Translations under genes and position numbers: made by a program
Sequence record: MF498773.1
Length of the DNA stretch: 64,000 nt
Strand: one strand, 5' to 3'
Notes under the pieces: model-generated
What the model was told of the DNA's origin: nothing
The model's database searches: none
The model's input: the letters and a program-made list of their open reading frames with translations, nothing else
In this document: positions 1 through 62,408 of the stretch, in pieces
Numbering within the stretch: position 1 is the stretch's first letter
Layout: each line of letters begins with the position of its first letter

Positions 1-299
1 GTTACTTTTACGCTTAGGCCCTTACGGGAATCTAAGCCTTTAGATTTAACGTCATAACGGACGCGCTTATGTGATGGCTTGAATCAGTGGTCATTCACAA
101 GCAGACTCCCTATGTAACCTTTTACCCGTCACGGACTAGAACCTTATTACAGGGAAGGAACCTACATCACCATTTGAATAATGGGAGAGGTCGGGGTTCG
201 GTTTTTATTTTCTAGCTTTCACTAGATTTTTACAAATACCGGTGGGCTACTTAAAGCGTCGATTCTCATAGACCGGACTATTGACAAGAATCCAAAATT
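1..299 (-). ncRNA. Candidate large structured ncRNA, probably truncated at the window edge
   Basis: No ORF. Minus strand shows GNRA-capped hairpins (CTAG-TGAAAG-CTAG, CCC-GTAA-GGG, GTCC-GTGA-CGGG), a GATTCT/AGAATC stem with possible CCGGT/ACCGG pseudoknot, and long-range GTGATG/CATCAC and CTCCC/GGGAG pairings. Directly downstream of tRNA-Thr. Confidence 0.6.
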
Positions 300-375
300 T
301 GGTGCCGAATGTCCGACTCGAACGGACCACCCCAGCGTTACAAAGGCTGTGCTCTACCAGATGAGCTAATTCGGC
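300..375 (-). tRNA. tRNA-Thr(UGU)
   Basis: Cloverleaf GCCGAAT...ATTCGGC-A-CCA, anticodon TGT, T-loop GTTCGAG. Confidence 0.97.
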
Positions 376-654
376 TGACGGAATATAATCAGGATCGTTA
401 GACTGTGATTATATCCTAATGTGGTTGACATGCTATCATATCGAGGAAGGACGTTCAACCGATTTTGTCCATCTGTTCGTTGTTTGGTAAAGGACAGTTA
501 CCTCAAGTTCAACCCTGCTTGTCAAGGGGTAGTTACCATATCGTCTTTGTACTACCAATCCCGCCTGAAACCTAAAGGCACGTTTCAGGATATCCAGATT
601 CTCTATGGCTGGCTTATTCCGGGGCATACGTCGTTACCCGTTCTTTGTGCTAAG
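376..654 (-). ncRNA. Candidate ~280-nt structured RNA spacer
   Basis: Stems CCTGAAAC/GTTTCAGG, GGTAGT/ACTACC, TGTCC/GGACA, GGTTGA/TCAACC, ATATAATCA/TGATTATAT and closing CGGAATA/TATTCCG, between two tRNAs. Confidence 0.5.
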
Positions 655-730
655 TGGTCGGTGATACAGGACTCGAACCTGTGACCCTCTGGTCCCAAAC
701 CAGACGCGCTACCAACTGCGCTAATCACCG
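655..730 (-). tRNA. tRNA-Pro(UGG)
   Basis: CGGTGAT...ATCACCG-A-CCA cloverleaf, anticodon TGG. Confidence 0.97.
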
Positions 731-884
731 AAAAGTTCCAAATCAACTGTATTTTACATACCAGATGACCACATCCCTATAATGGTTGATTTGGATTACC
801 CCGTGCTTATCCGTAACGATTTAAAACCGCAAGGGGGCATCGTCTCCGAGGATTTTATCAGAACGTCTTCTAACTTCTTCTATT
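731..884 (-). ncRNA. Candidate ~150-nt structured RNA spacer
   Basis: 11-bp perfect stem TCCAAATCAAC/GTTGATTTGGA plus CCCCTTGC/GCACGGGG stem. Confidence 0.4.
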
Positions 885-975
885 TGGTGGATGTTGTTGG
901 ATTCGAACCAACTTGTTTACCCAGAGGGAACGGATTTACAGTCCGCCGCTACACCGCCATCGTAGCCGAACATCC
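885..975 (-). tRNA. tRNA-Tyr(GUA)
   Basis: GGATGTT...AACATCC-A-CCA, anticodon loop CTGTAAA, long variable arm. Confidence 0.95.
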
Positions 976-981
976 AGAATT

Positions 982-1058
982 TGGCTGGCGAGGTGGGATT
1001 CGAACCCACGACATACGGATTAACAGTCCGCCACTCTAACCTACTGAGTTACACGCCA
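982..1058 (-). tRNA. tRNA-Asn(GUU)
   Basis: Anticodon loop CTGTTAA, GTTCGAAT T-loop, encoded CCA. Confidence 0.96.
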
Positions 1059-1059
1059 T

Positions 1060-1137
1060 TGGAAGCGGGGGGTGGATTTGAACCACCGATTTCCAGATAA
1101 TGAGTCTGGTGAGAACTCCTGACTTCTCCACCCCGCT
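1060..1137 (-). tRNA. tRNA-Met(CAU), atypical
   Basis: AGCGGGG...CCCCGCT-T-CCA; anticodon arm CCAGA-CTCATTA-TCTGG. Confidence 0.9.
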
Positions 1138-1302
1138 ATGAATATTTAGGGTGGTCTTTCACCCTTCATGAATCTTGGTCATTATAACCCGGCTACATAC
1201 GCGCATCAACATCCCTTTTGATATTTTTAGAAGCGATGGGACTCTGTATCGCTTCATTATTATCGTAAGGTCAACGACCATTAAATTAGTGAGAGCTTAC
1301 GA

Positions 1303-1497
1303 CTATAGAATATATGCATTAACTATGGATTTTTCAATCTGTCTTACTGACGTAAGTTTATTCTTACCTTTAAACTTAAAGGCAGGTTCTCCATTTGGAG
1401 CAAACCCAAAGACTACTAAACTATGGCGTCCATTCTTCCAGTGGATTATACCATCACCAACTGACCAATTTTCAATTATGGATTTTATACCAGACAT
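1303..1497 (-). CDS. Small hypothetical protein (64 aa) in tRNA cluster
   Basis: ORF co-oriented with tRNAs, GAG RBS upstream. Confidence 0.6.
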   Translation of the reverse strand: MSGIKSIIENWSVGDGIIHWKNGRHSLVVFGFAPNGEPAFKFKGKNKLTSVRQIEKSIVNAYIL

Positions 1498-1519
1498 AAT
1501 ATAGCTCTCATCAAAAATT

Positions 1520-1596
1520 TGGTGGCCCCTACTGGACTCGAACCAGTGACCAACCGATTATGAGTCGGCTGCTCTAACCTACTGAGCTAAGGGGCC
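1520..1596 (-). tRNA. tRNA-Ile2(CAU, lysidine type)
   Basis: GGCCCCT...AGGGGCC-A-CCA with loop CTCATAA; near-identical in pattern to enterobacterial ileX. Confidence 0.92.
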
Positions 1597-1599
1597 AAA

Positions 1600-1669
1600 T
1601 GATATGTTCTTTAGTCGAGCCGACTTATCCGTATTCTTTCAACGGTGAGCTGATAGCTGTAACACATCA
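1600..1669 (-). ncRNA. tRNA-like cloverleaf element without CCA
   Basis: 9-bp closing stem TGATGTGTT/AACATATCA enclosing three hairpins (AGCT/AGCT, CCGT/ACGG, AGTCG/CGACT). Confidence 0.45.
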
Positions 1670-1680
1670 ATTTTAAATCT

Positions 1681-1756
1681 TGGAGCGGGTAGCCGGTAAC
1701 GATCCGGTCTACTCAAACTTGGAAGGCTTGCATGTATCCATAAACACCTTACCCGC
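1681..1756 (-). tRNA. tRNA-Gly(UCC)
   Basis: GCGGGTA...TACCCGC-T-CCA, anticodon TCC, non-canonical T-loop ATCGTTA. Confidence 0.93.
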
Positions 1757-1757
1757 T

Positions 1758-1841
1758 TGGTCGGGATGGACGGACTCGAACCGTCACGCCTATGGCGCTA
1801 GAACCTAAATCTAGTGTGTCTGCCAATTTCACCACATCCCG
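1758..1841 (-). tRNA. tRNA-Leu(UAG)
   Basis: CGGGATG...CATCCCG-A-CCA, loop TTTAGGT, long variable arm. Confidence 0.96.
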
Positions 1842-1918
1842 TGGTGCGCCGTACTGGATTCGAACCAGTGACCCACGCTTTAGAAGAACGTTGCTCTATC
1901 CAACTGAGCTAACAGCGC
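1842..1918 (-). tRNA. tRNA-Arg(UCU)
   Basis: GCGCTGT...ACGGCGC-A-CCA, loop CTTCTAA. Confidence 0.96.
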
Positions 1919-1919
1919 A

Positions 1920-1969
1920 ATTTATATAAACATCATATCACAGTTAGAAAGGATGTTTAACTTTTATTT
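1920..1969 (-). promoter_or_regulatory. Sigma70/early-type promoter cassette, copy 1 of an identical 50-bp direct repeat
   Basis: Minus strand TTAAAC-17nt-TATGAT with TGTG extended -10; identical to 3081-3130; directly upstream of tRNA-Arg. Confidence 0.75.
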
Positions 1970-2362
1970 GAAGTATTTTTCGAAGTAAGCGACTGGATGT
2001 CTAGCTTCTTCATCATACTCGTATTTAGGGGTGTCAGAAAACAATACCCTATAAGCAGTTTTCATCCCTGAACCATATGGTATCTCAATTTCATCGTTAA
2101 AGTCAAATGCTATATAACCTTTTTTACGGAGAGACCGACAACTAACACTCAACCAAGGTCCGCAACAGGATTTTAGTCTACCAATTGCGTAGATATCCTT
2201 TCCCTCGTTGTTAATATAGCAATAAATCTTGTCTACATCAACATCATGGATATTTTTCCATTCTTCACTGGTTTGTTTGAAGATCAAACTTGATTGAACC
2301 ACAGTAAGACCTTTCTTTATAAACTTACTAATACCAATGAGATGAATATCATGTTTATTCAT
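1964..2362 (-). CDS. Hypothetical protein (132 aa)
   Basis: ORF coupled to upstream ORF by ATGA overlap. Confidence 0.75.
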   Translation of the reverse strand: MNKHDIHLIGISKFIKKGLTVVQSSLIFKQTSEEWKNIHDVDVDKIYCYINNEGKDIYAIGRLKSCCGPWLSVSCRSLRKKGYIAFDFNDEIEIPYGSGMKTAYRVLFSDTPKYEYDEEARHPVAYFEKYFK

Positions 2363-2748
2363 GATAAACCTTCATATATTTCCATATCCCACGCAACGAT
2401 CTCGATAACTTTATAAGTATCACCGTCACCATTAGCCAGAGACCGAACACAAAAAGAAGGAAGGCATCCATGAACATCATACACTTTGTCATTGGTTATT
2501 TCTATATCACCAGTAACAATAATGATATTATCTTTCTTGTAAGTTTCTATGGAATTTAGAATACCAACCGGGTCTGGTGTATCTCTGACATTATCGATGT
2601 TAAAACATTTTTGACCAAAATTGATTAGAATAGGTAGTTTTTTAGAAAACTCATCTATAACTTGTTCATTCAAAATGAATTTTACACCATTCGTATTAAC
2701 CAATGAACTTTTTTCATTAAGGTTATAGGCCCCAAGCTTCACTTTCAT
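2359..2748 (-). CDS. Hypothetical protein (129 aa), weak resemblance to prohead-protease C-terminal fold
   Basis: ORF; LPSFCVRSLANG...YKVIEIVAWDM compared with gp21 IPGVSSRGLGS...YRLTVGVDVV. Confidence 0.7.
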   Translation of the reverse strand: MKVKLGAYNLNEKSSLVNTNGVKFILNEQVIDEFSKKLPILINFGQKCFNIDNVRDTPDPVGILNSIETYKKDNIIIVTGDIEITNDKVYDVHGCLPSFCVRSLANGDGDTYKVIEIVAWDMEIYEGLS

Positions 2749-2749
2749 T

Positions 2750-2887
2750 TTAATATCTCGATTTTTGATAGAAAGGCTTCAAATGTTTACCACGCATAAT
2801 CTTTACAAATTTACCTTTACAGTGATCTTCGTTGAAGATACTACCCCAAAGGACTCCACACATGTAATTTCTGATATATACGTTCAT
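2750..2887 (-). CDS. Small hypothetical protein (45 aa, MNVYIRNYMCG...)
   Basis: Manually translated ORF ending 1 nt before the next start. Confidence 0.55.
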   Translation of the reverse strand: MNVYIRNYMCGVLWGSIFNEDHCKGKFVKIMRGKHLKPFYQKSRY

Positions 2888-2985
2888 ATTAAGCATCTCA
2901 TATTGAATTTGTGAGATGATAAACTCGTTTAACGTCCAAAAAGCTCATTCAACAAAAAGGAATTTGAGTTTATCATCTCGTATTT

Positions 2986-3078
2986 TGGTGCGTGAGGTGG
3001 GAATCGAACCCACGATGTGCCATTATGCAGTATCGGATTTTAAGTCCGATGCGTTTCAACCAACTTCGCCACTCACGC
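2986..3078 (-). tRNA. tRNA-Leu(UAA)
   Basis: GCGTGAG...CTCACGC-A-CCA, loop CTTAAAA, long variable arm. Confidence 0.96.
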
Positions 3079-3080
3079 TC

Positions 3081-3130
3081 ATTTATATAAACATCATATC
3101 ACAGTTAGAAAGGATGTTTAACTTTTATTT
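3081..3130 (-). promoter_or_regulatory. Promoter cassette, copy 2 of the 50-bp direct repeat
   Basis: Identical to 1920-1969; directly upstream of tRNA-Leu(UAA). Confidence 0.75.
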
Positions 3131-3372
3131 TCTTTTATACCAAGTCGATATGCTTCTACACAGTATGCGTCGATCCTTGATACCGGGACCATAAAAGCTT
3201 TAGAAAGCCGAATCTTAATACGTTCGTTCTCTTTAGCCCGCTCATATAGTTTTCGAAATGGCTCTGGGTCTATAGGCTGAACAGAACATATTTGGTTTGC
3301 GATATCTAGCGGGTATATTCTTCCCGCACAATTTACTTTTTCTGTTTCTAAAAACATAATATCATTTCTCAC
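3118..3372 (-). CDS. Hypothetical protein (84 aa) with gp21-like N-terminal motif
   Basis: FLETEKVNCAGRIYP compared with this phage's gp21 FLQAEVPNGNGRIYP. Confidence 0.7.
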   Translation of the reverse strand: MRNDIMFLETEKVNCAGRIYPLDIANQICSVQPIDPEPFRKLYERAKENERIKIRLSKAFMVPVSRIDAYCVEAYRLGIKENKS

Positions 3373-4833: not shown

Positions 4834-5847
4834 TTAAACTTTGTTAGCTTTCAACATAAATTTCTTGACAAGAGCTTCCATCTGTGCTCCACCAGAAGAA
4901 CTATGGGATTTCATGGTCTGAACAAGTTCTTTCATCACATCCATATTTTCCGGGGTTTCTATCTCATAGAAAGGAGTAGTTACAGACCAACGTTCTTTAG
5001 AACCGGTTCGACCACTGATATTCCATATACCTTTTCGCATCCATGTCATACGAGAAAAGTAAATCACAGAACCGTTACCAATGTCAACCGCGAAATCATC
5101 ACCACCCAAATGTTTTCCTTCAAGTTCTTTTTTGACGAAAAGAACATAATCGGCTTTCTTGAGCGGCTTGACCTTTTTATCACCAGAAAAAGCTTTCTTT
5201 AGCTTGGTTTCTGGGAAAAGGATTTTCGGATCCTTCATAAACTTTTCAGTTTCGGATTGGTTGTAATTGCTTTGGGTCATTTTTACTTTTTTACGGTCAA
5301 TCAGAACCTCAGTGAAAACACCCATCTTATCCAACTCAGGTTTATCAATACCTGCACCCAGAGCTTTGGTGATAAACACATGAGCCATTGCATTCAGATC
5401 AAAGAAAACTGTACGGTCTTCCGACGTAAATTTATAATCGACAGAAGAAGTTCCCCAAGTACCAACGGTAATTTTACGTTCAAATGTGAACTTTTTACCG
5501 CTCATCTTTTGGAAGTAGTCGAGATAAGCCTGAGTATCAAAAAACTTATCAAACATATGGGTCACGAAGTTAGTTACAACGTGTTTCTCTTCTTCCTGCT
5601 TCTGTTTTCGCTGTGCCCATGTAGCTTCTTGGGTTGCAGGAGAACCAGATTTTTTCAGTTCTTCGTAAGCTTGGTTTACTGCCTGCATTTTTTCGGTGGA
5701 ACCACCACGGTCTGGGTGATTATCCTTTGCTGCCTTGCGATATGCAGCCTTTAGTTGGTCATCAGTAAACTTACCAGTCAAACCAAGAGCCTTCATCGCG
5801 ACTGCTTGAGTCATAGATTCAAACAGCTCATTAAACATCTTAGACAT
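4834..5847 (-). CDS. DnaJ/J-domain co-chaperone (337 aa)
   Basis: N-terminal LGL...LKAAYRKAAKDNHPDRGGSTEKMQAVNQAYEEL with HPD motif; late promoter at 5871-5877. Confidence 0.9.
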   Translation of the reverse strand: MSKMFNELFESMTQAVAMKALGLTGKFTDDQLKAAYRKAAKDNHPDRGGSTEKMQAVNQAYEELKKSGSPATQEATWAQRKQKQEEEKHVVTNFVTHMFDKFFDTQAYLDYFQKMSGKKFTFERKITVGTWGTSSVDYKFTSEDRTVFFDLNAMAHVFITKALGAGIDKPELDKMGVFTEVLIDRKKVKMTQSNYNQSETEKFMKDPKILFPETKLKKAFSGDKKVKPLKKADYVLFVKKELEGKHLGGDDFAVDIGNGSVIYFSRMTWMRKGIWNISGRTGSKERWSVTTPFYEIETPENMDVMKELVQTMKSHSSSGGAQMEALVKKFMLKANKV

Positions 5848-61991: not shown

Positions 61992-62408
61992 TTACTTTAC
62001 ACCAACCATAAGGGCTTGGTGGTCAACAATCGCTCTAATACTAAATCCACGTTGTCGGATAGATTCGATTGCACCATCACAAAACTTAATCATCAGATCC
62101 AGATAATCCAGTTTTTTTGATGACAAAAGAACTTTATCGTCCGCTGGGATGATGGTTTTTAATTCAGTTGCACTGAAATCGAACTCGCATATATCATCAC
62201 CACGCCCAGTATTGTGCATTAGACTATCTTTCAGGATAACAACATGCGAAGAATGAATACCAATACGCTGACGACTTAGGTCTGCTTTGTACCGGATCCA
62301 TTTCCCATAGATTACTGGATTGTCCATAGCGGAATTTTGAATATTACCACGGTCGATAATAAGGTCTTTTTCCAATTCTGCTTGTAAGCTTTCCAATGAG
62401 TGATCCAT
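61992..62408 (-). CDS. uvsY: Recombination mediator UvsY
   Basis: IYGKWIRY, AIESIRQRGFSIR. Confidence 0.93.
   Translation of the reverse strand: MDHSLESLQAELEKDLIIDRGNIQNSAMDNPVIYGKWIRYKADLSRQRIGIHSSHVVILKDSLMHNTGRGDDICEFDFSATELKTIIPADDKVLLSSKKLDYLDLMIKFCDGAIESIRQRGFSIRAIVDHQALMVGVK

Follow-up and report, generated by a model that had tools for sequence, protein, structure and literature searches.

The stable RNAs encoded in the tRNA clusters of phages T4 and T5 have been known for about fifty years and, to our knowledge, none has been assigned a role. The T4 record annotates rnaC and rnaD (the species 1 and 2 RNAs) inside its tRNA cluster, and the T5 record lists eight “stable RNAs with unknown functions” (RNAI, RNAIII, RNAIV, RNA1, RNA2, RNA2H, RNA3 and RNAX). 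RNA C and RNA D of T4 are late RNAs by Northern blot (PMC9697503), and their roles are unknown (PMC3014915). The phage RNAs GOLLD and ROOL also lie near tRNA islands, and GOLLD can carry tRNAs in a linker (PMC12286853). Here we describe structured RNAs in the tRNA array of Aeromonas phage AS-szw, a T4-like phage (Straboviridae, Emmerichvirinae, Ceceduovirus), using a 64,000-nucleotide (nt) stretch of sequence record MF498773.1 (hereafter the window), whose positions 1 to 3200 are 100% identical to positions 62001 to 65200 of that record. Positions beyond the window start are given as negative numbers or in L001, the AS-szw record around the window start (L001 position = window position + 6000). 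A first-pass annotation had proposed that window positions 1 to 299, alone or with 376 to 654 and 731 to 884, form a large structured noncoding RNA, possibly of the GOLLD or ROOL class, interrupted by tRNAs. Our analysis indicates instead that the spacers of the array probably encode several small structured RNAs, each distinct from the others and on the tRNA strand, which would be cotranscribed with the tRNAs, released by tRNA processing and active independently of one another.

All 10 tRNAs predicted in the window by ARAGORN, and all neighboring coding sequences, lie on the minus strand; the RNA of positions 1 to 299 was therefore read as the reverse complement of the window. In this sense the segment lies directly downstream of tRNA-Thr(UGU) (300 to 375, minus strand; found by ARAGORN; Rfam tRNA score of 55.7 bits), which sets the 5′ boundary of the spacer RNA and, like tRNA-Pro and tRNA-Tyr, has an encoded CCA. 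Positions 1 to 299 are noncoding, as first proposed: open reading frames (ORFs) there reach at most 42 amino acids, as expected by chance, and no gene is annotated there in any relative. The spacers are also GC-richer than the flanking coding sequences (0.42 to 0.47 versus 0.28 to 0.39).

Comparison with described RNAs of phage tRNA clusters

As judged from sequence, the closest known analogues of the AS-szw RNAs appear to be the stable RNAs of the T4 and T5 tRNA clusters, without detectable homology, and the AS-szw modules are probably new members of this known, unexplained kind. T4 rnaC and rnaD share with them a position in the tRNA cluster, the tRNA strand, small size, noncoding character and a function that is not known. 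The T4 gene order (gp3, gp1, 57A, tRNAs, stable RNAs, lysozyme) is matched by AS-szw (tail completion protein, dNMP kinase, tail-fiber chaperone, tRNA array, small ORFs, lysozyme) and by phage G2. However, T4 RNA C ends in a tRNA-like T arm and acceptor strand, an end not seen in the AS-szw RNA, and the AS-szw spacers are longer and more numerous than rnaC and rnaD. A covariance model (R1) of the 95-nt element described below, run with filters off over the T4 tRNA region, found nothing at rnaC and rnaD (2409 to 2672); alignment of rnaC and rnaD with the AS-szw RNA in MAFFT was not convincing; and none of the ten known stable RNAs of T4 and T5 matched the AS-szw spacer in blastn. Kinship with rnaD, considered by eye from shared short strings (GAUGGUUCCCUG..., UUACAUCA), was dropped because the filters-off R1 and blastn searches were empty. 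In T5, stable RNAs are likewise interspersed among tRNA genes of the same strand, with the 719-nt RNAX next to tRNA-Arg. T5-like Aeromonas phages share the 95-nt element with AS-szw, whereas T5 itself has no copy, and the best match of R1 (filters off) in the T5 tRNA region had an E value of 0.52.

The window, positions 1 to 3200, positions 1 to 299 alone and the upstream flank were searched with Rfam, both with gathering-score cutoffs and at E ≤ 10; apart from tRNAs there was nothing but noise, and no ribozyme or riboswitch was matched. Membership of GOLLD (RF01998) or ROOL (RF03087) was not borne out in any of these four stretches even at E ≤ 10, and the upstream flank, whose inclusion the first-pass annotation had advised, matched no family except tRNA. 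GOLLD and ROOL resemble the AS-szw RNAs in being phage-borne, close to tRNA islands, heavily structured and without a known function, but the AS-szw RNAs are modular, individually about 95 to 405 nt long, and vary module by module between close relatives. As first noted, positions 1 to 299 have no tmRNA-like or tRNA-like ends that ARAGORN or Rfam could match, and no tmRNA was found by ARAGORN (window and flank) or by Rfam. Structured noncoding RNA in the array was supported when homologues were collected: the sequence is conserved in related phages, with compensatory changes in both 1 to 299 and 376 to 654, and matches no Rfam family.

The 95-nt element

The core of the first spacer is a conserved 95-nt element (112 to 206, minus strand), which by its sequence appears to be an undescribed motif shared with unrelated phages. 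It comprises an A-rich 5′ end, a variable hairpin (P2, 186 to 167), a 42-nt core (120 to 161, minus strand) and a GGUUACAU tail. In the core, the 4-bp helix P1'' (161 to 158 with 127 to 124) encloses P3 (153 to 142; CCU-GUAAUA-AGG in AS-szw and CCU-RUAANA-AGG across the family), a UU-rich junction and P4 (136 to 128; GUC-CGU-GAC in AS-szw, in general G-N-C/CGN/G-N'-C), and is followed by an A-rich tail (AAAA in AS-szw). Copies about 82% identical were found by blastn in the T5-like Aeromonas phages AhSzw-1, Akh-2 and AhP_Mru1 (Demerecviridae), in Aeromonas phage Ahp1_CNU and in the T4-like Citrobacter phage Ci1; the element is also carried by the T4-like Cronobacter phages S13 and LPCS28 and, as a partial copy, by the T4-like Serratia phage 4S, and pattern scans recovered more copies in viral and metagenomic contigs. 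A looser pattern scan of viral contigs for additional members gave chance matches only. Carriers thus found span Demerecviridae, several Straboviridae lineages and uncultivated viral contigs, and every copy is unannotated, lies within a tRNA array and is oriented in the tRNA sense. In T5-like phages the element occurs on its own.

Model R1 was built from an alignment of 13 distinct sequences (A4) and a hand-derived structure. It scored 113.4 bits (E = 2.5e-23) on window positions 112 to 206 (minus strand), a sequence used in building it, and outside its training set it recovered three full-length members in viral contigs (41 to 47 bits) and, at lower scores, just the 42-nt core in Serratia phage 4S (33 bits) and in two other contigs, L041 and L042 (22 to 24 bits). 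Across 18 sequences, 91% of cells were paired and 11 of 22 pairs changed on both sides, versus 3.2 in shuffled alignments; none of 500 shuffles reached the observed covariation and all slid controls were far lower. The middle pair of P4 occurs as UA (11 sequences), GC (4), CG (2) and AU (1). P1'' is C-G/U.G/U.G/G.U in Aeromonas phages, gains a U-A pair in the Ci1 group, consists of four Watson-Crick pairs (ACCG/CGGU) in Serratia phage 4S, and is altered on both sides in 4S, L041 and L042. Because a U.G pair of P1'' would be A.C on the other strand, this helix supports an RNA in the tRNA sense. P2 is compensated between AS-szw (CCCAUU/AAUGG) and L033 (CCCUUG/CAAGG), and elsewhere takes the form of a GNRA-capped 3-bp stem (T5-like phages) or a long stem (Ahp1_CNU). 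Set on these short covarying helices are invariant loops and single strands, namely, the P3 loop RUAANA, the UU junction and the A-rich tail.

Several other readings of the element were tried and rejected. Pairing of the upstream ACCC with GGGU, as in the minimum free energy (MFE) fold, fails in the Ci1, S13 and L043 lineages, where P1'' holds. An AUG-GUG-AUG frame inside the element is closed by a stop codon 3 to 8 codons on and does not occur in Ci1. Three resemblances seen by eye were also discarded: a hammerhead-like core (UGAUG...) had no Rfam ribozyme match; a mimic of the tRNA-Tyr anticodon loop (CUGUAAU) would have G34, which is A in Serratia phage 4S; and a type I-E CRISPR repeat mimic would be missing the long repeat stem, while covariation favors a different 3-bp hairpin. 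Mimicry of host RNA was sought by blastn (E ≤ 10) of the 95-nt element, the stretch of modules A to C and module D (both described below) against 5,426 Escherichia coli genomes, with no match.

Two carriers have additional features. Phage ZPAH1 has a second, partial copy (L009 2786 to 2811) upstream of its complete copy, made up of the 5′ half only (ACCCUCUCCC, hairpin, GGUGAUG); the element is therefore built of separable submodules. In Serratia phage 4S, a segment resembling the helix 11/12 region of 16S rRNA lies directly upstream of the 42-nt core (L039 2427 to 2475; about 148696 to 148744 of MW082584.1). It has a local match to the Rfam small-subunit rRNA model (32.6 bits, E = 8e-6), shares 81% identity with E. 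coli 16S genes across 47 nt, and sits in a 460-nt GC-rich noncoding stretch before tRNA-Gly, where the core motif has a large insertion. Such a segment would be a possible phage-borne mimic of an rRNA fragment.

Modular organization among relatives

A sense-strand alignment from tRNA-Thr onward was made for ten phages (G2, AP1, P19, Assk, CC2, ZPAH1, Aswh_1, 65, avDM6 and AS-szw), in which blocks of the spacer are present, absent, replaced or duplicated independently of one another. This is not the behavior of a single RNA with one conserved architecture. Module A (299 to 229) consists of a hairpin (261 to 293, minus strand; outer stem GAUUCU(U/C)/GAGAAUC, inner stem AUAG/CUAU, loop UCCGGU at 277 to 272) and a conserved linker. 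Pair 287-266 of the hairpin shows a compensatory change (U-A in AS-szw, C-G in phages 65 and avDM6), and pair 286-267 is U.G in AS-szw and C-G in relatives. In ZPAH1 and Aswh_1 an unrelated hairpin substitutes for that of module A and the linker is retained. The linker (238 to 260, minus strand), identified in the alignment as GACGCUUUAAGUAGCC followed by ACCGGU at 243 to 238 (the proposed pseudoknot partner), is near-invariant in all Emmerichvirinae relatives, including those without module B.

Module B, a 172-nt block from about 215 to 42 (minus strand), contains the 95-nt element and is wholly missing from phages 65 and avDM6. A small hairpin (211 to 226, minus strand; UCUAGU-GAAA-GCUAGA, with a GNRA tetraloop) is seen in the sequence and in both MFE and RNAalifold folds. 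Two further predicted hairpins (102 to 65 and 64 to 49, together 49 to 102, minus strand) complete the module in Aeromonas T4-like phages; they are kept in ZPAH1 and Aswh_1 and are gone with the rest of module B in 65 and avDM6. Module C runs from 40 to about −105, ending at a tRNA-Trp relic. It starts with a hairpin (1 to 40, minus strand; GCUUAG at 37 to 32 with CUAAGC at 17 to 12, inner CCC-GUAA-GGG) whose stem is conserved and whose loop is variable (GUAA, AUAA, GAAA or 7 nt), and compensatory changes occur in helices that lie further downstream, in the flank (pairs 560-591, 565-586 and 627-643 of alignment A6).

In phage CC2 (L011 3299 to 3434), about 100 nt of extra sequence interrupts module C, with a second GCUUAG...CUAAGC hairpin, slightly different from the first, at its flank. 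Hairpins of this type may be recombination joints for module exchange, and an alternative is that the conserved features are signals in DNA, namely, promoters, recombination hot spots that shuffle cassettes, or targets of homing endonucleases. The position of module boundaries at hairpins, the duplicated hairpin around the CC2 insert and an excess of promoter-like hexamers (21 observed versus 12.6 expected) fit such signals, as does the preferred inheritance of the T4 tRNA region driven by SegB (PMC2330249). Yet the 95-nt family has no conserved promoter consensus (a TTGACA in Ci1 is not common to the others), T4-type late promoters (TATAAATA) are absent from the array, and shared promoter types are not expected between T4-like and T5-like phages; strand-specific G.U pairs and compensatory changes suit RNA. 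We consider DNA-level signals an unlikely explanation of the spacers.

Between the blocks, the number and identity of tRNAs vary among relatives: phage 65 has Thr, Ile, Ser and Asp tRNAs ahead of module A, and in ZPAH1 no tRNA separates module D from module B. Homing endonuclease genes lie inside the arrays of P19 (L037 1 to 457) and ZPAH1 (L009 1284 to 1643), not in that of AS-szw; T4 segB and the T5 heg genes are comparable homing endonucleases in tRNA arrays, and such enzymes probably contribute to array mosaicism.

The first-pass proposal of one RNA over 1 to 299, 376 to 654 and 731 to 884, an ornate GOLLD- or ROOL-type molecule with tRNA-Thr and tRNA-Pro in its linkers and possibly released from it, has to be set against this mosaic. 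It would accord with the location of GOLLD and ROOL near phage tRNA islands and with the linker tRNAs of GOLLD (PMC12286853), each of the three spacers is GC-rich with a high degree of predicted structure, and RNAalifold offers one long-range helix within 1 to 299 plus flank. Nevertheless, gain, loss and rearrangement affect each piece separately, the intervening tRNAs differ among relatives, and Rfam gave no match to GOLLD, ROOL or any other such family even at E ≤ 10. The 95-nt element is found by itself in T5-like phages, as is a domain of module D in jumbo phages, and no long-range pair shows covariation linking different pieces. A single giant RNA is thus very improbable, and separate small RNAs account better for the array.

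Upstream of position 1, a tRNA-Trp(CCA) (L001 5845 to 5920, about −155 to −80) has lost 21 internal nt between two AAATCC repeats in AS-szw. With them went the 3′ side of the anticodon stem and part of the T arm, and the deletion could be genuine decay or an assembly error. The relic matches the Rfam tRNA model at L001 5840 to 5890 with 22.4 bits (gathering score of 29). AP1, P19, CC2, ZPAH1 and Aswh_1 retain an intact gene, Assk has one with 6 nt deleted, and G2 and 65 have none. A relic this close to the spacer raises the possibility that the spacers are neutral debris, decayed tRNA genes and recombination scars conserved merely through close kinship, and the highly variable tRNA content of the arrays and the homing endonuclease genes in those of P19, ZPAH1, T4 and T5 would agree with that. 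However, ARAGORN and the Rfam tRNA model found no tRNA or pseudo-tRNA cloverleaf in 1 to 299, 376 to 654 or 731 to 884, compensatory changes maintain the helices, and conservation of the 95-nt element and of the module D domain extends over different phage families and host genera. Neutral debris is a very improbable origin for what we read as structured RNAs.

The second and third spacers

The 279-nt spacer between tRNA-Pro and tRNA-Thr (module D, 376 to 654, minus strand) is conserved at 84 to 99% in Ceceduovirus and Ishigurovirus phages, and of the 69 pairs that RNAalifold predicts in it, 8 show compensatory changes among six phages. Interleaved helices CCU/GGG and CAAG/CUUG were recognized by eye, each with a compensatory change in phage 65, which suggests a pseudoknot. 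A 63-amino-acid ORF in this spacer was rejected as a gene, being broken by 1-nt indels among relatives. The central domain of module D (about 130 nt; 470 to 600, minus strand) also occurs in E. coli jumbo phages of the genus Asteriusvirus (L047 1440 to 1600), whose carriers are vB_Ec-M-J, Turkey3 and one IMG/VR contig, with genomes of about 350 to 380 kb. There it stands alone, in the tRNA sense within a tRNA-containing region, with most helices rewritten by compensatory changes, and it appears to be a second undescribed RNA motif. A scan for the domain returned only phages already known as carriers.

The 154-nt spacer between tRNA-Tyr and tRNA-Pro (module E, 731 to 884, minus strand) is predicted by RNAalifold to be structured, with 49 pairs, none changed on both sides among five almost identical sequences. 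It has only about 42 nt in common with avDM6.

Folding of positions 1 to 299

The minus strand of positions 1 to 299 folds at −79.3 kcal/mol (z = −2.87), a value matched by none of 200 shuffles, and the plus strand folds with z = −1.76. Of the GNRA loops reported in the first-pass annotation, the minus strand has two (GAAA at 220 to 217 and GUAA at 25 to 22), so that “several” was generous. Nested long-range helices, also reported, are predicted by both MFE and RNAalifold, but compensatory changes support local helices only. For the stretch of modules A to C, RNAalifold gave 102 pairs, 5 of them compensatory; in its long-range helix, which does not vary and competes with the local hairpin, the module A linker is paired with the 3′ strand of the hairpin of module C.

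The proposed pseudoknot, between the hairpin loop UCCGGU (277 to 272) and the downstream ACCGG (243 to 239), is present in sequence as first described, but the pairing itself carries no covariation signal. Both strands are invariant wherever they are present and the pairing is therefore beyond the reach of covariation; CCGG is, moreover, self-complementary. Loop and partner are gone together in ZPAH1 and Aswh_1, a joint loss that may lend the pseudoknot weak backing. The description of the segment as at least 299 nt long was apt, as the noncoding stretch runs about 255 nt past window position 1 (L001 5745 to 6000), through the tRNA-Trp relic and up to a mini-ORF and a 64-codon ORF.

Release and possible roles of the spacer RNAs

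In bacterial tRNA operons, RNase P cuts tRNA 5′ ends, and RNase E and exonucleases trim the 3′ ends. On the basis of this general processing, we infer that the AS-szw spacers would be transcribed together with the tRNAs, that host RNase P would cut at each tRNA 5′ end and that RNase E and exonucleases would trim the encoded CCA ends. This would release stable RNAs of about 405 nt (between tRNA-Thr and the site of tRNA-Trp; window 299 to about −105), 279 nt (654 to 376) and 154 nt (884 to 731). The broken tRNA-Trp of AS-szw may not direct RNase P, in which case the first RNA may run toward the downstream ORFs.

Some observations weigh against separate, structured and functional small RNAs. The comparative helices of the 95-nt element amount to −3.3 kcal/mol in AS-szw, versus −21.3 kcal/mol for an MFE fold with partly different pairs, so that the true fold of the element needs tertiary contacts, a partner or additional helices. 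P3 (CCU/AGG) is invariant and hence provides no covariation evidence, and an outer helix P0 (AUGUAG/UUACAU) is poorly conserved, one of its pairs being unpaired in 8 of 16 cells. Many of the element sequences are close relatives and the alignment used (A7) was fitted to the model, both of which inflate apparent support. Given the long-range pairing predicted between modules A and C, A to C may fold as one unit, and some modules may have no function of their own beyond acting as spacers for processing or stability.

That the loops of the 95-nt element stay invariant while its short helices covary, and that unrelated phages of different hosts have exchanged it, suggests a conserved binding partner; any function of the element is speculative. 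The element would then be a horizontally exchanged RNA module, acting via its invariant loops on a conserved host or phage factor. It is conceivable, if doubtful, that the element or its 42-nt core represents a new class of trans-acting phage RNA, spreading horizontally among the tRNA arrays of large virulent phages, T4-like and T5-like phages included, whose invariant loops would bind and neutralize a conserved host factor; it might serve as a decoy against tRNA- or translation-directed defense, or be a small aptamer or ribozyme. If so, array spacer RNAs would form a reservoir of counter-defense RNAs beside the tRNAs. A T5 tRNA neutralizes the PARIS system, showing that phage tRNAs counter host defenses (PMC11464382), and the same question is therefore worth asking of the neighboring RNAs.

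The 95-nt element and the central domain of module D, both supported by covariation and in no family library, are each common to phage families infecting different hosts, which is hard to explain unless the RNAs act. The 95-nt element is also short, sharply delimited and present in culturable phages. Even if these RNAs were mere processing spacers, annotation would still gain, as several relatives bear spurious “hypothetical protein” calls there.

Flanking ORFs and a candidate promoter

In the upstream flank, an 8-codon mini-ORF with a strong GAGAGG ribosome-binding site (L001 about 5718 to 5745, minus strand) precedes a 64-codon ORF (L001 5421 to 5615, minus strand), which is without annotation in AS-szw and is called a “hypothetical protein” in AP1, P19 and ZPAH1. 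The spacer RNA could in principle be a cis-acting leader for such small ORFs downstream of the array, for example, with ACCUCUC masking the GAGAGG site about 440 nt further on. ACCUCUC (window about 191 to 185) is indeed complementary to the GAGAGGU preceding the mini-ORF, and no terminator separates the array from the downstream ORFs, terminator-like sites on the tRNA strand numbering 0 across the array. But in T5-like phages and Ahp1_CNU tRNAs lie on both sides of the element and no ORF follows it, the CCUCU stretch is not retained in the L043 to L045 lineage, and Shine-Dalgarno-like complements are frequent by chance, which leaves a leader role extremely improbable next to independent small RNAs.

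The best sigma-70-like match near positions 1 to 299 lies at window 1181 to 1209 (minus strand; TTGATG-17 nt-TATAAT), directly upstream of tRNA-Met (1060 to 1137). By its match to the consensus, it is a candidate start for a subarray that would include the spacer RNAs.

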